Shown here: positions 5,768 through 61,457 of the stretch, one piece after another
Position numbering within the stretch: the stretch's first letter is position 1
Layout of the letters: every line of letters starts with the position of its first letter
Sequence record: NC_061441.1
DNA length: 64,000 nucleotides
Reading direction: 5' to 3' (one strand)
Made by a program: the position numbers and the translations under genes
Notes under the pieces: generated by a model
Database searches by the model: none
The model's input: only the letters and a program-made list of their open reading frames with translations
What the model was told of the DNA's origin: nothing

Positions 5768-5808
5768 AAAAAAAAATGGGAGGCCCCGAAAGGAGTCTCC
5801 CATTTTTG
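5768..5808. terminator. Bidirectional intrinsic terminator
   Basis: A-run + ATGGGAGGC..GAAA..GTCTCCCAT + T-run between convergent genes. Confidence 0.85.
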
Positions 5809-5988
5809 TTACTGCTGCTTTTCCGCTTGCTGTCTTAAACGATCAAGGAATGCCGAACTTTCACCTGGCTTAATGTGTCTCGGTTCAACTTTGATGCGAT
5901 TGATCATACGCTGCATACGACGAATGCTTCGGCTACGCAGGTCTTCAATCGAGTGCTGCTTAAACTGCTTTCTGAATTTCAGAGCCAT
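5809..5988 (-). CDS. Small basic protein, 59 aa (MALKFRKQFKQHS...EKQQ), absent from the ORF track
   Basis: ATG two bases after the primase stop, AAGGA RBS, TAA at 5809-5811 just before the terminator. Confidence 0.7.
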   Translation of the reverse strand: MALKFRKQFKQHSIEDLRSRSIRRMQRMINRIKVEPRHIKPGESSAFLDRLRQQAEKQQ

Positions 5989-16391: not shown

Positions 16392-16420
16392 GGGGTAGCT
16401 TAGGCTGCCCCTTCTTTTCT
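16392..16420 (+). terminator. Intrinsic terminator
   Basis: GGGGTAGC-TTAG-GCTGCCCC-TTCTTTT. Confidence 0.8.
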
Positions 16421-42198: not shown

Positions 42199-43179
42199 AT
42201 GCGTTTTGGTTTCGCCTGCAAATTGCTTGACGCAAACAACAAACAACCATTCACGAATAAGAGCCTTAGCTATAAACATTTCTCTGCGCTGTCTGCTACT
42301 GACCAACATGCAAAACTTCTGGACGTTGTTACGCACAACCTGACTTCGTTGCTCAACATGATTAAACACGTTGGCCGACTGCGTACAGACCTACGTATGT
42401 TTCGAATCACCAGTGAGTTGCTTCCACTCTACACTCACCCTAAAGTGTTTCACATGTACATGCGCCATGACGTTGTTACTCTTACTGAGTCGCTACTCGC
42501 CTTGTGTGGTGAAGCGGCTCGACGCCATGACGTGCGATTATCATTTCACCCAGGTCAGTTCACGGTACTCGCATCTGACCGACCTGATGTTGTCCAGAAC
42601 TCAATAGCCGAACTTGAGTACCATGCGTACTGTGCATATCACATGGGATATGGTCGCCGCTTCCAAGACTTCAAAATCAATATTCACCTTAGCGGTAGAC
42701 TTGGTGCTTCTGGTTTCAGACAAGCGCATTCGAAACTTTCTGATCGCTGCCGAAACATGTTGACCGTAGAGAACGACGAAATCACTTCCAGCCTCGAAGA
42801 TGTTTTGTGTCTGGCAGACATATGCCCGATTGTCCTCGACATTCATCATCACTGGGTAATGACCAACGAATACATACAACCGACCGACGATCGTGTTCAG
42901 CGTGTCATTGATTCTTGGCGCGGCGTAAGACCAGTAGCGCATTACTCTGTGTCGAAGCCTGAGTTCGTACCGTCGCGCGGACTCCCTGATCAGAACAAGC
43001 TGTCCGCTAATCGAATGCAGTTACGTGCTCATGCTGATTACTACCACAACGAAGACGTAAACGAGTGGGCCACTAGTTTCACTGATTTTGACCTTATGTG
43101 TGAGTCAAAAGCGAAAAATAGGGCTAGACTGAAACTGGCGTGTTTTAGCGTCAACTCTGCAAATAATTGGACAAAATGA
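42199..43179 (+). CDS. uvsE: UV damage endonuclease (UvsE/UVDE)
   Basis: FGFACK, FRITSELLP, RLSFHPGQF, VENDE, VLDIHHHW, HYS, AHADY, MCESKAK. Confidence 0.93.
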   Translation: MRFGFACKLLDANNKQPFTNKSLSYKHFSALSATDQHAKLLDVVTHNLTSLLNMIKHVGRLRTDLRMFRITSELLPLYTHPKVFHMYMRHDVVTLTESLLALCGEAARRHDVRLSFHPGQFTVLASDRPDVVQNSIAELEYHAYCAYHMGYGRRFQDFKINIHLSGRLGASGFRQAHSKLSDRCRNMLTVENDEITSSLEDVLCLADICPIVLDIHHHWVMTNEYIQPTDDRVQRVIDSWRGVRPVAHYSVSKPEFVPSRGLPDQNKLSANRMQLRAHADYYHNEDVNEWATSFTDFDLMCESKAKNRARLKLACFSVNSANNWTK

Positions 43180-43212
43180 GGCTTGTTTACGAAGGTAGCC
43201 CTGTGATACACT
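43153..43212 (+). promoter_or_regulatory. Early promoter cassette P5
   Basis: AACTCTGCAAATAATTGGACAAAATG; TTGTTT-18-TACACT; hairpin GAGCG-TTAT-CGCTC. Confidence 0.75.
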
Positions 43213-55950: not shown

Positions 55951-55999
55951 AAAACTGGCTAAAATCGTGGTATCAATTTAAGCCCGACTGTGATATACT
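55951..55999 (+). promoter_or_regulatory. Early promoter cassette P8
   Basis: AAAACTGGCTAAAATCGTGG; TG-A-TATACT at 37 nt; hairpin 56001-56023. Confidence 0.8.
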
Positions 56000-56049
56000 A
56001 AAAGCGTAGCGATGCTGCGCTTTTTCACTTATGTCTGAGGAGACAACAA

Positions 56050-56514: not shown

Positions 56515-57199
56515 CATGAAACCTGACTACACTCTGCTGAAACGTAGTAAGACGCACGAAGATGTTTTCGCTTTCGTGTTTGATGGCGAGTTGCTTGTTC
56601 AATTCAAAGCTGTCCAGTTGCATAAAGCTCTGACCGAAACGCTCAAAGCAAACTGCATCAATGAAGTCGATATCCTGTGGCGCGACGGTACGCGTACGGT
56701 CCAACAACTGGTTGTGCATCATACGCGTGAGTTCGTACAGTTCGACACTATCGTCCACAACTACAGCGTGTGCCTGATGCTTCGCGCACAAGGCGTTGGT
56801 CATTCGCTCGCTGTGCCTGTCGATGTTCGTTCTATGTATGATGCCGACGGCCCGATGATCAGTGAGATTCGCATTGATAGTGAAACAGTCGCTGATCTAA
56901 TGCGTCACATTAAAACCACGCCATACATTGATCCAGAAGAAGATGACGATGTTGGCGATATGGACGAAGATGATGATTGGGATGACGATGATCTCGATCC
57001 GACCGAGTTCCACGATATCGAAACAGAATCTATTGCCGATAACAAATTGCAGATTGGCGACTGGGGATATCGCGCCCACGACTGGGCGATCACTCTGACC
57101 GACGAACAGGTAGACCGCATTCACTTCCTCGAAGTCGGCATTGACCCTGACATTGAACTGCCTATTGCCGATGATGCTAAGAAGGACGCATTCTTCTAA
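56507..57199 (+). CDS. Hypothetical protein with acidic C-terminal half
   Basis: 230 aa. Confidence 0.75.
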   Translation: MNNMKPDYTLLKRSKTHEDVFAFVFDGELLVQFKAVQLHKALTETLKANCINEVDILWRDGTRTVQQLVVHHTREFVQFDTIVHNYSVCLMLRAQGVGHSLAVPVDVRSMYDADGPMISEIRIDSETVADLMRHIKTTPYIDPEEDDDVGDMDEDDDWDDDDLDPTEFHDIETESIADNKLQIGDWGYRAHDWAITLTDEQVDRIHFLEVGIDPDIELPIADDAKKDAFF

Positions 57200-57390
57200 T
57201 GAAAACGATCAACGAACAAGTCAACGAATTGAAACAGCGCGGCGTGCTTATCATCGAAGAACACCAGAAGCATACGCTGCCAGATTTGACCTTCACGCTT
57301 GACTGCATGTGTCTGCCTCATACGAAGCGTGAAGTAGAGACAACCACGCGCGGCCGCGTTGTTAAGATTCGCCTGACAAACATTCACTAA
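57199..57390 (+). CDS. Hypothetical protein
   Basis: TAATG overlap, 63 aa. Confidence 0.7.
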   Translation: MKTINEQVNELKQRGVLIIEEHQKHTLPDLTFTLDCMCLPHTKREVETTTRGRVVKIRLTNIH

Positions 57391-57534
57391 CTTTTGTGGT
57401 CTTGGCCCGCCCGTCCAGAAATGCTCACCCCCAATGAGGTGTCTCGCGCATAGGCATGACGGTCACCGGGTCCTTTTTAGAGCGCACTACAGAGTACGCT
57501 GTACAAAGTAAACAACAAAACAGGAGGCTGTTAT

Positions 57535-57879
57535 ATGCGTTTCACCGAAGTATCAAAAGACGCACAGGTTGCGTTAATGTCTAGCGCACTTGCGGGAGTA
57601 ATTGAGGCATTCACCCGCGAAGAAGATGATGAAGGCCGCAAGATTCTAGTTCTGGCCCTCAAGCAAGTCGGTCTGACGGTAGATGAGTTCAGCGCACTTA
57701 TCTCTGACTTGTCGCCAGAAGTTGAGCTTGAGATCGTTCGCGTTATGGAAGCTGCTGATGCCGAAGCGGATGAAGAAGACGCAGACAGCGAACTCGACAC
57801 GATGGAAGAGCGCCCAGGCAACCTGAACGATGCGCCGAACATTAATGCAGACGGCTGGGAGAATCTCAAAGATGAGTAG
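57535..57879 (+). CDS. Acidic hypothetical protein
   Basis: AGGAGG RBS. Confidence 0.8.
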   Translation: MRFTEVSKDAQVALMSSALAGVIEAFTREEDDEGRKILVLALKQVGLTVDEFSALISDLSPEVELEIVRVMEAADAEADEEDADSELDTMEERPGNLNDAPNINADGWENLKDE

Positions 57880-58075
57880 TCAAGATGATGTGAATGGTAG
57901 AATTGCTGCGGCCGACGAGCAACGTCAGAAAGAGCGTGAATCACGCTATGATGATTGGTCGATTGACGACCTGCGTGATGCTCTGCTTGAGAATGGTCTT
58001 GTATTTGACGGTGAAGACGTAGACGACTACAGCCGCGCAGACTGTATCAGACTGCTACTGGCTGATGGCTTCTAA
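57872..58075 (+). CDS. Small acidic protein with Rho_N/HeH-like module
   Basis: YDDWSIDDLRDALLENGL...SRADCIRLLL. Confidence 0.7.
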   Translation: MSSQDDVNGRIAAADEQRQKERESRYDDWSIDDLRDALLENGLVFDGEDVDDYSRADCIRLLLADGF

Positions 58076-58080
58076 GCACA

Positions 58081-58128
58081 AAACTGGACAAAATCGTGGT
58101 TGTCTCAAATAGCTGCCTGAACTATACT
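58081..58128 (+). promoter_or_regulatory. Early promoter cassette P9
   Basis: AAACTGGACAAAATCGTGG; TTGTCT-17-TATACT; 37 nt from the GG. Confidence 0.8.
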
Positions 58129-58176
58129 ATATAGACAGCGAGACAACTATCTCTCTGTATGCCTTTGTTATTGCTT

Positions 58177-58325
58177 GACCGTGCGTTTTTCGATTTTCCC
58201 GGACGCACGGTCCTTTTTAAAGTGGACTTCGCTGAGGTTCCTTTAAAAAGGGTTCGATACCCTTTGAGCGCGTCGGGCTTTACGCGGTTTCCGCCTTACG
58301 TGCTCTCATGCTAAACCGCAAAGGA
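58177..58325 (+). ncRNA. Candidate structured 5' leader/ncRNA (four hairpins plus alternative pairing)
   Basis: Stems 58177-58212, 58214-58249, 58247-58265 (TTCGATA loop), 58266-58305; GCGGTTT/AAACCGC next to the RBS. Confidence 0.5.
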
Positions 58326-58332
58326 AATTGAA

Positions 58333-59091
58333 ATGCCTACTACTTCACGTCCTAAGACAGAAGACAAGTTTTCCCGTGCTCGCGCCGCCAAAAACTCACC
58401 TGAGCGTCAGGCCGCGGCCACCAAGAAAACGCCACGAGGTCCTTCCTCGGTTCGTCCTAAATCAACGGCAGATCGTGAGCCTAAGATTCGTGACGAGGAG
58501 CGTGTGTACAATCTCGTACATGCAATTCTGAGCGCGTGGAAAGCTGATGTGGGACATGCCGAAAACACGGCAGCCTCTGCTGGTATCATCAAAGTGTCTC
58601 GCCGTAAAATTGAAGGCTCCTTGCGTGACCTCAAGAATACGCGCTTCACTAAAATCCCGACGCTCATTAATGACGTCCTCGTGTATAACGAAGTCTGCAA
58701 TGAGTTCGGGCAGTGGGTGTACGTTGAGCATGACAGTCCTGATTGGATTTTCGTGCGACTGCCGGATAACAGCACACCTGTGATTCGTGCTGATATCAGC
58801 TACGACAAGACAGGCAAAACTGCCGCATCTGTTTCAACTTCAAGCGAAGTTTTGCTGGAAGACTTGGACGAAGAAGAGGAAGATGAAATCCCTGAGAACG
58901 TCGAATATGACGACGAGGACGATTCTGATGTGAATGAAGAAGAGGACGACGAGGAGGAGTACCAGTCCTGGTCCCTCAGCCAACTTCAAAACTTTGCTAA
59001 GGCCGAAGGTTACATCGGCATCAAAGATGAAGGTTGGAACGACCGCCAGACGCTTCTTGCTCGCATCCTGAATAAGGGAGCAATCAAATGA
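58333..59091 (+). CDS. Hypothetical protein: basic N-terminus, acidic linker, C-terminal Rho_N/HeH-like module
   Basis: YQSWSLSQLQNFAKAEGY...RQTLLARIL; AAGGA RBS. Confidence 0.8.
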   Translation: MPTTSRPKTEDKFSRARAAKNSPERQAAATKKTPRGPSSVRPKSTADREPKIRDEERVYNLVHAILSAWKADVGHAENTAASAGIIKVSRRKIEGSLRDLKNTRFTKIPTLINDVLVYNEVCNEFGQWVYVEHDSPDWIFVRLPDNSTPVIRADISYDKTGKTAASVSTSSEVLLEDLDEEEEDEIPENVEYDDEDDSDVNEEEDDEEEYQSWSLSQLQNFAKAEGYIGIKDEGWNDRQTLLARILNKGAIK

Positions 59092-59537
59092 GTCTGACTA
59101 TTCGCTCTGCTGCCGAAACTGCTGCAATGATCATTGAAAACGTCACTCTCTACTCTCAAGAGAAGGGGCACGAATATCCGCTGCCGCGCTTTAAGATGCC
59201 CGACAATGCGATACGTCGAATCTCTGGTCATGCTCGCGTTCTGCCTGAAAGCTATATTGAGCAACTGTCTATCGAGCTGCAACAAATCGACTGGATGATG
59301 CTGCGGTATAACGCCGGCGAGTTCTTGTTCATGCACTACGATATCCCAAAGAACTGGACGCGACTGAGTGCGAAGCGTGTGGTCCCTAATGACGACCCTG
59401 CCGCTGAGTACGATACGTGGACGCTTCCTGAACTTCAGGGATTCGCTCAACGTAACGACTTTTTGCAGCCTGACGAAGAGGGCTTCAACGATAGAGCGTC
59501 ACTGATTCGCGCTATCATGCTAGGCGAGACCCATTGA
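59088..59537 (+). CDS. Hypothetical protein with C-terminal Rho_N/HeH-like module
   Basis: YDTWTLPELQGFAQRNDF...RASLIRAIM. Confidence 0.8.
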   Translation: MSLTIRSAAETAAMIIENVTLYSQEKGHEYPLPRFKMPDNAIRRISGHARVLPESYIEQLSIELQQIDWMMLRYNAGEFLFMHYDIPKNWTRLSAKRVVPNDDPAAEYDTWTLPELQGFAQRNDFLQPDEEGFNDRASLIRAIMLGETH

Positions 59538-59555
59538 GTAGGGGAAGATAATCGA

Positions 59556-59702
59556 ATGAACAAATCTAAGCGGGACGCAGAAGACCCCGACATTGCTAAA
59601 ATGCGCAAGCGTCTGGTAGATGCGAAAATCATCAAGCCAGAAGCTGCTGTGAAGCTGTCAAGCAATGACATTGTGAAGCTGTACACTTACTACAGCGTAT
59701 AA
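59556..59702 (+). CDS. 48-aa protein (MNKSKRDAED...YYSV), absent from the ORF track
   Basis: GGGGA RBS; KMRKRLVDAKII..EAAVKLSSNDIVKLY resembles the C-terminus of 59868..61457. Confidence 0.7.
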   Translation: MNKSKRDAEDPDIAKMRKRLVDAKIIKPEAAVKLSSNDIVKLYTYYSV

Positions 59703-59755
59703 GCAATAATGAGCAGGCAGTGAACGTGCTGCCTGCTATCTGCGAAGTATGCAGA

Positions 59756-59804
59756 AAACTGGACAAAATCGTGGTTGTTATCTGAAAGCAACCTATGCTA
59801 TACT
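59756..59804 (+). promoter_or_regulatory. Early promoter cassette P10
   Basis: AAAACTGGACAAAATCGTGG; TTGTTA-18-TATACT; hairpin GACGC-AATATC-GCGTC. Confidence 0.8.
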
Positions 59805-59867: not shown

Positions 59868-61457
59868 ATGGCACGTCTGGAAACTAACACTAACCTGGTT
59901 GGCAAAACTATCATCCTGCTGAACGGCACCAAATCTAAAATCGAAGATGCAATCGCGTCTGGCTATAAAGTGAAGGGCCAGTCAAAACGTATCGCCACCC
60001 GCTGCGTCATCAAAGAAGGTTCTCACTTCCGCGAAATTGAGCGCATGAACATGAGCCAGCTGGAAGATACTGGTGAAGGTTACGTTAAACTGAAAGATGC
60101 GAAAGCGTCTGGTAAGAAAGCTGGCGCGAAAGAGAAAGAGCCGAAAGCGTCTGGCAAGAAGACTGGCGGCAAAGCTACGGCCAAAGAGAAAGAGCCGAAA
60201 GTTCGCCGTAAGTCTTCTAAAGAGCAAGGCGATGAGTATCAGGCTCTGGCGAAAGAAATCATCAAAGGCGGCAAACGTGCTGCGCCAGTTGAAATCGACG
60301 AGATCGATGGCGACCTGACTGATACCGTTGCTCAACGTCTGGTAGACGTACTGAACAATACCGAAATCGCCAAGCTGTGCGCTGACAACAAAACGCCGAT
60401 CGCTAACGCCATCGAAGTTGCTTACGGCGCTGAGTTCGCACCTGAAACAAACGTCATGCAGATCACGCTGAGCCTGCAATACGCGAAGCCTGTTAAAACG
60501 CAGTCATCTTCTACGCTGGAAAACGCCGATGCAATCGCGGCCCGTGCTAAGAAAATGATCGCGCCGAAGCTGTCTAAGAAACTCGCTAAGGCGATTCGTG
60601 AAGCGTTCGGCCTGGAAGACGCCGCCGAGCTTGAAGCTGGTACCGTGTTGTTGTCTGACGGCGCTGAGTTCGTCTTCTGCGGCGAGAGCGCGAAGCACCT
60701 CGGCAAAGCGCTGCTGTATGTTGTAGAGACCGACAAGTTCAAATCTGTTGTAGGCTCTGCGCTGGCTGATTACGAAATTGGTCAGGAAGAAGAAGAGGAA
60801 GAAGAGGAAGACCTCGAGGAAGAGGAGTCTGAGGAAGAAGAAGAAGAGGAGGAGGAGGAGGAAGAAGAAGACGGCGAAGAAGACGACGGTGAGTCTGACG
60901 ATACTGAATACCAGTATGTGGCCGTGACCAAAGATCATACCAACATGATCAACAAGAAAGTCACCGCTAAGTATCACGCCGCGCTGGCTGAGCGCTTCAA
61001 CACAACCGAAGAAGCTCTGGTACCTGGCCTCGTGTTGACTGACGGCGAAACAACGTTCGCTTACCTGGGCTGTGATAGCAAAGGTGGTCTGCTGGTCATC
61101 GACGTTGAAGCTGAGGAGAACGAAGAAGACGTTCTGCTGTATAGCAAAGCCGATATCAAAGAACTGACCGACTTCAATCCTGTGCTGGATGACGTAGAAG
61201 GCGCTGCCGATGATGAAGGCGAAGAAGAAGACGGTGAAGAAGACGGTGAAGAAGAAGACGGTGAAGAAGATCTGGACGAAGAAGACGGCGAAGAGGAAGA
61301 AGACGACGAAGACTTCGACTTCGATGATGTTCCTGCCGTTGACCTGAAAGATCTGTCCGAAGACGAACTGCGTGACCGTGTCGTTGAAGCCGGCCTGACC
61401 ACCGTGCGTAAAGCTGACAAAATGAACGCGGCTCAACTGCGCAAGCTCCTGAAATAA
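59868..61457 (+). CDS. Large multi-domain protein with Lys-rich and Glu/Asp-rich IDRs
   Basis: 529 aa; KASGKK/KEKEPK repeats, poly-E tracts, terminal helix-pair module. Confidence 0.85.
   Translation: MARLETNTNLVGKTIILLNGTKSKIEDAIASGYKVKGQSKRIATRCVIKEGSHFREIERMNMSQLEDTGEGYVKLKDAKASGKKAGAKEKEPKASGKKTGGKATAKEKEPKVRRKSSKEQGDEYQALAKEIIKGGKRAAPVEIDEIDGDLTDTVAQRLVDVLNNTEIAKLCADNKTPIANAIEVAYGAEFAPETNVMQITLSLQYAKPVKTQSSSTLENADAIAARAKKMIAPKLSKKLAKAIREAFGLEDAAELEAGTVLLSDGAEFVFCGESAKHLGKALLYVVETDKFKSVVGSALADYEIGQEEEEEEEEDLEEEESEEEEEEEEEEEEEDGEEDDGESDDTEYQYVAVTKDHTNMINKKVTAKYHAALAERFNTTEEALVPGLVLTDGETTFAYLGCDSKGGLLVIDVEAEENEEDVLLYSKADIKELTDFNPVLDDVEGAADDEGEEEDGEEDGEEEDGEEDLDEEDGEEEEDDEDFDFDDVPAVDLKDLSEDELRDRVVEAGLTTVRKADKMNAAQLRKLLK

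Follow-up and report, generated by a model that had tools for sequence, protein, structure and literature searches.

We analyzed a 64,000-nucleotide stretch of sequence record NC_061441.1 (the window), which is 100% identical to the Erwinia jumbo phage pEa_SNUABM_16 (MZ443782, Alexandravirus, 266.8 kb; window position 58076 is record position 244076). Judged by comparative sequence analysis, the leader that ends before the start codon at 58333 (+ strand, 58135–58332; ~198 nt from the predicted transcription start site (TSS) to the base before the AUG) is a cis-acting RNA of an enterobacterial jumbo phage group, previously undescribed and absent from Rfam. Its modules are arranged in the order of a 5′-terminal hairpin (H0), a hairpin with a run of five U residues followed by a second hairpin (H1, U5, and H2), a hairpin that mimics the T-arm of tRNA (H3), and a hairpin that is tied by a pseudoknot to the Shine-Dalgarno (SD) sequence (H4). 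Leaders with a cis-regulatory structure are familiar from T4-like and lambdoid phages but almost uncharted in jumbo phages, whose early genes are mostly annotated as 'hypothetical'.

Conservation and covariation of the leader RNA

The minimum free energy (MFE) of the leader was −74.9 kcal/mol, versus −53.3 ± 4.8 kcal/mol for dinucleotide shuffles (z = −4.46; none of 200 shuffles equaled it). Homologous leaders were drawn from GenBank phages (Alexandravirus species, Yoloswag, Rivsvirus pEa_SNUABM_5, and the SNUABM_13/34 group), from IMG/VR, and from contigs coding for homologues of the downstream protein. RNAalifold recovered H1, H2, H3, and H4 from 17 distinct sequences, with 14 pairs preserved by double changes. 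For the explicit structure (H0–H4 plus the pseudoknot), 94.9% of alignment cells were paired across the 17 homologues, and 17 pairs had changed on both sides, versus 5.1 ± 1.7 in shuffles (0/500 matched the observed value); pairing dropped to 35–56% in control structures slid by 1–3 columns. Each hairpin from H0 to H4 showed compensatory changes among 17–29 related phages. An original prediction, made from the window's sequence, had drawn H1–H4 and a loop-to-tail pairing and had proposed covariation in homologous regions as a check. All four hairpins and the pairing lie where they were drawn, and covariation was found for H0–H4 and the pseudoknot alike.

Conserved G·U pairs at alignment columns 196/227, 201/222, and 150/162 would read as C·A on the opposite strand. 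These pairs are valid on the + strand only, and the structure is therefore that of the RNA made from the promoter-transcribed strand. A palindrome or operator acting at the DNA level was disfavored by the same G·U pairs, together with two independent C-to-U changes that produced wobble pairs. The core of the original prediction, a structured RNA in the 5′ leader of the gene cluster that starts at 58333, thus held up as a conserved and strand-specific element with covariation.

Among seven to ten divergent homologues, identity was 75–95% in the segment from H3 to the SD, 48–76% in H0–H2, and 50–72% in the coding sequence (CDS), and the identity of the downstream protein fell to 34–60%. The RNA is far more conserved than any neighboring protein, which points to a conserved partner, probably one of the host. 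A search with the 4227 families of Rfam 15 returned nothing at the gathering score in the window, curated riboswitch aptamer models included, and nothing relevant at E ≤ 10 in 57000–59500 or in five homologous loci. With its covariation-supported pseudoknot joined to the ribosome-binding site, the leader represents a new RNA family.

In scans of IMG/VR, JGI metagenomes, and GTDB genomes, the element was confined to one enterobacterial jumbo phage group. Two of the contigs carry unexpected labels. L041, a 266-kb contig in a Salmonella enterica Infantis assembly (GCA_007314735.1), has the size of a complete Alexandravirus-like genome, which suggests a relative that infects or contaminates Salmonella cultures. 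L042 (JAVWLC010000023.1, 'MAG: Raoultibacter sp.', that is, a metagenome-assembled genome) is a 14-kb contig with the phage leader and gene within an actinobacterial assembly, most likely a mis-binned jumbo-phage contig.

The H4 pseudoknot at the Shine-Dalgarno sequence

H4 (58266–58305) consists of a lower stem (58266–73/58298–305) and an upper stem (58275–78/58293–96), capped by a nearly invariant 14-nt loop, UUUACGCGGUUUYC. In 18 sequences, 6 of the 13 stem pairs had changed on both sides, and the stem was entirely re-coded in phages JA11 and fHe-Yen9-02. We reached JA11 and JA29 (Dickeya, Salmondvirus) by tblastn with the downstream protein, and the copy in the Yersinia phage fHe-Yen9-02 with a covariance model of the H4-pseudoknot-SD module (model R1; E = 4e-4, full length). 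The H4 covariance model scored 80–101 bits with a single match per genome, and searches with models R1 and R2 over the 64-kb window and over 50 kb of fHe-Yen9-02 yielded a single copy in each. Every genome stretch searched held one copy of the module, always immediately 5′ of a start codon.

Within the H4 loop, GCGGUUU (58284–58290) is complementary to AAACCGC (58313–58319), which abuts the SD. The intervening loop 3, UCAUGCU (58306–58312), keeps its UCA even in the alignments of fHe-Yen9-02 and JA11. Further 3′, the columns of the SD region, CAAAGGAAAU (58319–58335; AAGGA at 58321–25, AUG at 58333), are invariant; the tail as a whole (UCAU..UAAAYCGCAAAGGAAAU) is nearly so, and the spacing between pseudoknot, SD, and AUG does not vary. 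All seven pairs were present in all 18–19 sequences (100% of cells paired). JA11 and JA29 have GGGGUUU/AAAUCCC, that is, one C-G to G-C swap plus one G·U pair. In fHe-Yen9-02, the loop reads UUUAU-CAGACUU-C on a 14-bp stem of different sequence, and the tail reads UCAUCGAC-AAGUCUG-UGAG...AUG; the resulting CAGACUU/AAGUCUG helix has seven Watson-Crick pairs, four of which are double-changed relative to the window. Loop-to-tail helices of at least seven Watson-Crick pairs arose in 1.2–4% of shuffles in each of the three lineages. Because JA11 also permits an alternative register (AUUUACG/CGUAAAU), its change is not decisive alone, and the re-coding in fHe-Yen9-02 carries most weight. On this comparative evidence, GCGGUUU/AAACCGC is a real pseudoknot of the H-type. 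The original prediction of this pairing before the ribosome-binding site was thus borne out, with compensatory changes in its support.

The three lineages also share a loop 1 that starts with UUUA, a loop 3 that starts with UCA, U-A pairs at the junction-proximal end of stem 2, and an SD that begins 0–2 nt after stem 2. In ensembles computed without the pseudoknot (PK-free ensembles), its two strands were mostly unpaired (P ~0.13–0.2), and the energy of the duplex was −8.5 kcal/mol. A U-rich loop 1 lying beside U-A pairs is the geometry of triple-helix pseudoknots, an established topology, and by analogy the pseudoknot in the leader may adopt it. Two other pairings of this region were rejected: a mini-hairpin in the H4 loop (GCGG/CCGC) is broken in type-B lineages, and a second pseudoknot register (GUUUCC/GGAAAU) is weak (−1.4 kcal/mol) and inconsistent across lineages.

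Comparison of gene orders showed that the modules are separable. In JA11 and JA29, the homologous gene is preceded solely by a promoter, a 5′ hairpin, H4 with the pseudoknot, and the SD, while the counterparts of H1 (a hairpin with loop GGAUUUCCC), the U-run, and H2 are placed one gene upstream. In fHe-Yen9-02, H1, the U-run, and H2 follow gene 210, and H4 with the pseudoknot is found ~1.6 kb further on, before gene 215. The product of gene 215 has no detectable similarity to the protein encoded at 58333 (E = 2); the gene is nevertheless in the syntenic position, since the gene directly downstream of it is homologous to the one at 59868 in the window (41% identity, E = 6e-89). The T-arm is restricted to phages with fused modules, namely Alexandravirus, Yoloswag, Rivsvirus, and metagenomic relatives, and is missing from JA11 and fHe-Yen9-02.

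The leader is always in cis to the downstream genes. In pEa_SNUABM_30 (locus L015, 590–720) and phB78 (locus L017, 710–840), a deletion took H4, the pseudoknot, and three genes, and left the promoter, H0, H1, and H2 together with a degenerate T-arm joined to the region at window ~59727; the T-loops have decayed to UUCUAUACU and UAGAUACU. The T-arm was lost along with the downstream genes and therefore fits a role in cis. As a compact and portable module for the control of expression, the element may be of use in phage engineering and biocontrol for Erwinia, Dickeya, and Yersinia.

Upstream hairpins, competing helices, and possible modes of control

H0 (58135–58158, ACAG-GAGA/UCUC-CUGU) starts at the predicted TSS and is folded in the MFE structure; across the 17 homologues, 84.9% of its cells were paired and 3 pairs had changed on both sides. 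The linker to H1 contains, in some lineages only, an extra anti-SD-like copy of CCUUUG (58162–58167; missing in S17, AD1, S13, and others); in the PK-free ensemble of the window, its pairing with the SD had P ~1.0. A long-range helix of the single-sequence MFE (CCUUUGU/GCAAAGG) was not conserved among homologues and was discarded. So was an Hfq-type trans-acting small RNA running from the promoter to H1: the H0-H1 linker is the least conserved part (53–76% identity, with lineage-specific sequences), and the run after H1 has merely 4–5 U residues, short of the long U-tail of such RNAs.

H1 (58177–58218 with its U-run) has a GC-rich 10-bp stem (58177–58186/58203–58212), a 16-nt loop, and C-UUUUU at 58213–58218. 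Covariation supported 6 of 9 pairs among the 17 homologues, and UCCUUUUU in the H1 and U-run element was nearly invariant in 29 homologues. The hairpin energy, −18.1 kcal/mol, is within the range of the canonical terminators of the phage (e.g. 5803, 16415, 20321, 24313, 27050, 50830); our terminator scan, which required a loop of 3–8 nt, did not flag H1 with its 16-nt loop. This energy agrees with the terminator-like character that the original prediction had noted, and termination or attenuation at H1 is plausible. In relatives where H1 comes after a gene, it may merely end the upstream unit. The window's arrangement, with a GC-rich hairpin and a U-run placed between promoter and genes and within ~80 nt of the promoter, has parallels among the promoter-proximal terminators and attenuators of phage operons, such as lambda PR′-tR′ and 6S RNA; here, though, the loop is large (16 nt), and in relatives the hairpin follows a gene, not a promoter.

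The loop of H1 carries a motif (GGAUUUCCC/GAUUUUCCC) that recurs across genera despite differing stems, in JA11, fHe-Yen9-02, L047, and the window (L051, 220–300; L053, 405–475; window, 58187–58202), and that could be a protein-binding or kissing-loop site. Pairing of GAUUUCC in this loop with the SD was weak (−4.3 kcal/mol) and inconsistent across lineages, and was rejected.

H2 (58219–58244) has a base of AAAG (58219–22) and CUUU (58241–44) under a 7-bp apical stem (58224–30/58234–40). Its two helices were paired in 100% and 95% of cells of the 17 homologues, with A-U to C-G changes at the base. A hairpin at this place was correctly predicted; the 9-bp register UUUUUAAAG/CUUUAAAAA proposed for it, which uses the U-run after H1, is instead an extended alternative that competes with H3.

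H3 (58247–58265) is made up of AAAGGG (58247–52), the loop UUCGAUA (58253–59), and CCCUUU (58260–65). The loop is an exact match to the T-loop consensus GUUCNANNC on a 6-bp stem, in agreement with the original prediction; the T-arm motif calls for 5–6 bp closed by G53-C61 and for seven loop residues, U54-U55-C56-R57-A58-N-N. H3 was paired in 99% of cells, and its stem covaries (GGG/CCC to GAG/CUC in SNUABM_35, L041, L042, and L044). Position 57 of the T-loop varies between G and A, as in tRNAs; other variants are UUCAAUA (S3) and GUCGAUA (L042, with G at position 54), and the SNUABM_34 group has a replaced T-loop on a retained AAAGG/CCUUU stem. The 5′ strand of H3 (AAAGG) resembles an SD, whereas CCUUUG on the 3′ side is an anti-SD. 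Isolated stem-loops of the consensus type are substrates of E. coli TruB in vitro and are modified fastest when the stem has 6 bp (PMC13492117); by analogy, H3 is a plausible candidate substrate of TruB. It shares the exact GUUCNANNC on a 6-bp stem with tRNA T-arms and with the mRNA stem-loop substrates of TruB, Pus4, and TRUB1, and differs from them in lying in the mRNA leader of a bacterial virus, without the rest of a tRNA, and in having strands that double as SD decoy and anti-SD. An exact T-arm in such an mRNA is unusual and offers a way to ask if the enzymes that modify tRNA also target phage mRNAs or regulate them.

Complementary words recur along the leader. CCUUU after H1 (58212–16), the CCUUUG of the T-arm 3′ strand (58261–66), and the linker CCUUUG (58162–67) of some lineages are opposed by AAAGG in the T-arm 5′ strand (58247–51) and by CAAAGG at the SD (58319–24). 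Two alternative helices can be drawn from them. The first is an extended H2 (to 58211–58252), in which 58211–18 pairs with 58245–52, that is, the U-run and CC with an A-run and GG (95.7% paired in 29 sequences); the second joins the anti-SD at 58261–66 to the SD at 58319–24 (97.7%). Together, they were formable in 96.5% of cells in the 29 phages. Constrained folds with 'T-arm formed, SD free' and with 'T-arm 3′ strand on SD' differed by −5 to +5 kcal/mol among homologues, and in S17, L037, L042, and S34 the PK-free ensemble placed the SD on the T-arm 3′ strand (P 0.8–0.9). This pattern of pairing would fit an SD/anti-SD/anti-anti-SD design, with the T-arm as the anti-anti-SD.

We put the probability at roughly one half that the leader is a cis-acting control element of the operon at 58333–59702, chiefly at the step of translation initiation and perhaps with attenuation at H1. 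The operon would be an early one, transcribed by the host RNA polymerase. H1 and its U-run would act as a leaky intrinsic terminator, followed by H2. In a presumed ON state, the short H2, the T-arm, and H4 with the pseudoknot would leave the SD and AUG free. In the OFF state, the U-run and CC after H1 would zip onto the A-run and GG to form the extended H2, and CCUUUG, thus released, would pair with CAAAGG at the SD. The part likeliest to be read by a conserved partner, such as the ribosome, a host protein, or a ligand, would be the pseudoknot, whose loops (UUUAC and UCA) are invariant. Termination at H1, the two states, and a trigger for the exchange between them are all parts of the model; as the trigger, a conserved component of the host is likelier than the protein encoded downstream.

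Several observations weigh against this control model. The pseudoknot leaves the SD uncovered, so that it might raise initiation, lower it, or leave it unchanged, and a loop 3 of 7 nt would have far to reach along H4 with its ~12 stacked layers. The T-arm is not essential to the function of the pseudoknot, because the T-loop is replaced in the SNUABM_34 group and the H1-H3 block is missing at the modules of JA11 and fHe-Yen9-02. In the 29 phages, the alternative helices showed one compensatory change (SNUABM_35) and three mismatches; the slid controls reached 78%, the strings involved being near-invariant and of low, U/A-rich complexity. The predicted partner of the SD in PK-free ensembles also varied between lineages, and near-isoenergetic folds are not proof of a switch. 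A search for transcripts turned up no RNA-seq runs of infections; wastewater metatranscriptome contigs cover leaders of relatives, but these are uninformative on RNA ends, and the libraries may contain DNA.

A passive architecture is the first competing explanation, and in our view a rather unlikely one. In that case, H1 and U5 would be the terminator or insulator of the upstream unit, and the other hairpins and the pseudoknot would stabilize the mRNA (e.g. against RNase E), with no switch. The terminator-like energy and U-run of H1 agree with such a role, as does the finding that H1, the U-run, and H2 directly follow a stop codon in JA11 and fHe-Yen9-02, without a recognizable promoter. Moreover, a 5′ hairpin is generic to leaders of this promoter family, and the alternative helices lack covariation support. 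In the window, however, the promoter is upstream of H1, where a strong terminator would silence its own operon; the invariance of the pseudoknot loops and of the SD spacing across genera exceeds what a stabilizer would need, and the T-arm decays upon gene loss.

A narrower version of the control model, to which we give little credence, has a phage protein as the effector: the first gene product with its basic tail, or another early protein, would bind H4 and the pseudoknot and repress translation. T4 gp32 represses translation via its own leader pseudoknot. The pseudoknots of the T4 gene 32 leader and of the E. coli rpsO (S15) operator are, like the one described here, of the H-type, lie in a 5′ leader near the ribosome-binding site, and act in cis on initiation; the T4 gene 32 type is likewise conserved among related phages. 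In the window, the pseudoknot adjoins the ribosome-binding site, and the downstream products have basic N-terminal tails and helix-extended-helix (HeH)-like C-termini; the fold of the core domain is predicted with confidence, with weak winged-helix-like hints. The differences are several: the pseudoknot abuts the SD (0–1 nt) as opposed to lying ~40 nt upstream in T4 gene 32, stem 1, at ~12 bp, is of unusual length, the loops do not vary between genera whereas the downstream protein does, and that protein is neither a single-stranded DNA-binding nor a ribosomal protein. An RNA far better conserved than its neighboring proteins would rather have a host partner. In fHe-Yen9-02, the module precedes a protein dissimilar to the 58333 product although synteny is kept, and that product has no recognizable RNA-binding fold in searches of PDB sequences and with Foldseek. 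The suggestion of the original prediction that the leader is bound by the proteins encoded downstream is weakened accordingly.

A bolder proposal, and a long shot, is a riboregulator of a new class, whose moving part would be the T-arm copy that hides the anti-SD; host factors that bind or modify T-arms (TruB, TrmA, or other binders of the tRNA elbow), or a ligand of the invariant, triple-helix-like pseudoknot, would set the exposure of the SD. If true, the phage would read the state of tRNA or of the translation machinery in the host and time its early operon by it.

A new riboswitch seems improbable. In it, H4 and the pseudoknot, possibly as a triple helix in which the U-rich loop 1 lies against U-A pairs in stem 2, would bind an ion or a small molecule and thereby govern access to the SD. 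The preQ1-II, SAM-II, and fluoride riboswitch classes have a compact pseudoknot that abuts the SD. Here too, a compact pseudoknot with invariant loop nucleotides does so, its conservation exceeds that of the proteins, and the mutually exclusive helices could serve as an expression platform. With preQ1-II, SAM-II/SAM-V, and fluoride riboswitches, the leader shares the 3′ strand of the pseudoknot beside the SD, a U-rich loop placed for an A-U groove, and SD, anti-SD, and anti-anti-SD helices. By contrast, none of the 4227 Rfam families matched, even at E ≤ 10, and the SD lies outside the pseudoknot. The downstream genes encode small nucleic-acid-binding-like proteins with no metabolic or transport link, and the range is narrow, one enterobacterial jumbo phage group.

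We likewise hold it improbable that a stable tRNA-like RNA is freed from the leader (e.g. by RNase P or RNase E), to act in trans as a decoy or substrate for T-arm enzymes or tRNA-targeting defenses, or that the T-arm is a processing signal for the 5′ end of the mRNA. The exact GUUCNANNC T-arm on a 6-bp stem is of the type that, in isolation, is the best TruB substrate in vitro (PMC13492117), RNase E might cut in the AU-rich single strand that follows H1, and in pEa_SNUABM_13 a 95-nt tRNA-Glu(ttc) is annotated in GenBank (locus L002, 1606–1700; MZ475891, 241695–241789) and called again by ARAGORN. That feature spans the homologue of the leader from H1 to H3 and the beginning of H4, and it rests on the T-arm, a D-loop-like H1 loop, and chance acceptor pairing; almost certainly, it is a false tRNA call of the kind that ARAGORN-type predictors make. 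ARAGORN found no tRNA in the window and one in 32 homologous loci (pEa_SNUABM_13 itself), and no transfer-messenger RNA (tmRNA), standard or permuted, in the window or the 32 loci; there was also no Rfam hit, and the tRNA model RF00005 had no match at E ≤ 10 or E ≤ 5 in 57000–59500 or in five homologous loci. The acceptor-like stem UGCUUGA/UUGAGCG of a cloverleaf is weak and unconserved. Replacement of the T-loop in the SNUABM_34 group, its mutation in L042, the absence of the T-arm from JA11 and fHe-Yen9-02, and the loss of the T-arm with the downstream genes, which fits a cis role, all argue against a released RNA. The tRNA-like structures of turnip yellow mosaic virus and brome mosaic virus (TYMV/BMV TLS) and tmRNA also combine a T-arm with a pseudoknot in one RNA domain, but theirs are 3′-terminal and aminoacylatable, with an acceptor-stem mimic, whereas the element described here has neither an acceptor/CCA end nor a tmRNA call and lies in the 5′ leader of a DNA phage mRNA. 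The free-standing non-coding RNA that the original prediction had offered as one option was thus rejected, given also the fixed spacing to SD and AUG.

Very improbable is an element similar to put or nut, in which the contiguous H2-H3-H4 would render RNA polymerase resistant to termination over the operon: the hairpins are contiguous (0–2-nt linkers) just downstream of an early promoter, and UGCUCU in the H4 3′ strand may resemble the start of boxA, but the sole terminator-like element (H1) is upstream of H2-H3-H4, the invariant coupling to SD and AUG favors translation, and further boxA/boxB features are not present. A tRNA gene or pseudogene, as annotated in pEa_SNUABM_13, can be dismissed for practical purposes, since the GenBank feature and the ARAGORN call in that one phage are set against a length of 95 nt, a 'D stem' of 7 bp, an anticodon stem of poor quality, 31 other homologues without a call, the lack of an Rfam tRNA hit at E ≤ 5, and covariation that backs the H1-H4 fold, not a cloverleaf.

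The predicted promoter, the downstream operon, and neighboring features

The leader occupies most of an unannotated gap of 257 nt between the stop codon of the upstream gene (58073–75) and the start codon at 58333; every gene flanking it is annotated as 'hypothetical'. The promoter, P9 (58080–58128, + strand), comprises an upstream motif, AAAACTGGACAAAAT (58080–94), a −35 element TTGTCT (58100–05), a 17-nt spacer, and a −10 element TATACT (58123–28); in a consensus scan, 58100–58128 matched a sigma-70-like consensus. From these elements, P9 is predicted to be active, with a TSS near 58135, and it is kept in homologous phages. The motif AAAACTGGACAAAAT with −35 and −10 elements was found again at 59755–59804, and more loosely at ~43163–43210 and ~55951–56000. 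We noted that these form a promoter family (AAAACTGGACAAAAT, −35, and a TATACT-like −10), each member of which has a 5′ hairpin and a short leader behind it; the motif may serve as an UP element or be bound by a phage factor. The leaders of the three other promoters (~43163, 55951, and 59755) are ~50–65 nt long and consist of a 5′ hairpin and an SD, in contrast to ~198 nt after P9; the observation that all other cassettes have short leaders is hence true for these three same-family promoters of the window. A second copy of the leader, suggested by BLAST matches at '2 places per record', turned out to be the shared promoter motif at 59755 alone.

A leader peptide encoded at 58159–58314 was rejected, as this open reading frame (ORF) is not conserved and stops after four codons in the S17-type leader. 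Small coding sequences have nevertheless been annotated over the leader in relatives: Yoloswag gp311 (L003, 1458–1655), and, in fHe-Yen9-02, gene 214 and the upstream start codon of gene 215 (L054, 496–588 and 563–598), none of which is a conserved ORF. The true start of fHe-Yen9-02 gene 215 is likely the ATG at L054 599 (MPAINPRN...). The leader thus exposes annotation errors, both these spurious small ORFs and the tRNA-Glu of pEa_SNUABM_13.

According to ORFs and GenBank coding sequences, the operon (58333–59702, + strand) encodes a 252-aa protein (58333–59091), a 149-aa protein (59088–59537, with an ATGA overlap), and a 48-aa ORF (59556–59702). Homologues of these genes always come after the leader, and the next promoter is at 59755. 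The AlphaFold model of the 252-aa protein (mean predicted local distance difference test score (pLDDT) 75.8) has a basic disordered N-terminus, an alpha/beta core (residues 54–173, pLDDT ~90), an acidic linker, and a C-terminal helix-extended-helix-like module with a weak Ish1/HeH-type Pfam hit (E = 0.028). Foldseek returned no match at E < 0.07, with weak winged-helix-like hints, a PDB sequence search had no match, and Pfam and PHROGs gave weak hits alone. The 149-aa product falls into a PHROG with no assigned function and is homologous to fHe-Yen9-02 gene 211. Neither protein was marked out by these searches as an RNA-binding repressor.

In P0017, P0024, P0029, P0042, and others, the 58333-type protein ends in a fused copy of the 48-aa ORF (MNKSKRDAEDPDIAKMRKRLVDAKIIKPEAAVKL...); further 58333-type relatives have an HeH-like tail or none, and C-terminal tails thus appear to be shuffled modularly in the gene cluster. 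Downstream, 59868–61457 encodes a 529-aa protein (PHROG 33433) with long poly-Glu/Asp tracts and a C-terminal HeH-like motif. Elsewhere in the window, a canonical intrinsic terminator at 5776–5828 is bidirectional, with UGGGAG..CUCCCA between an A-run and a U-run on both strands, and compact GGGG...CCCC-UUUU terminators were found at 16415, 20321, 24313, 27050, and 50830.

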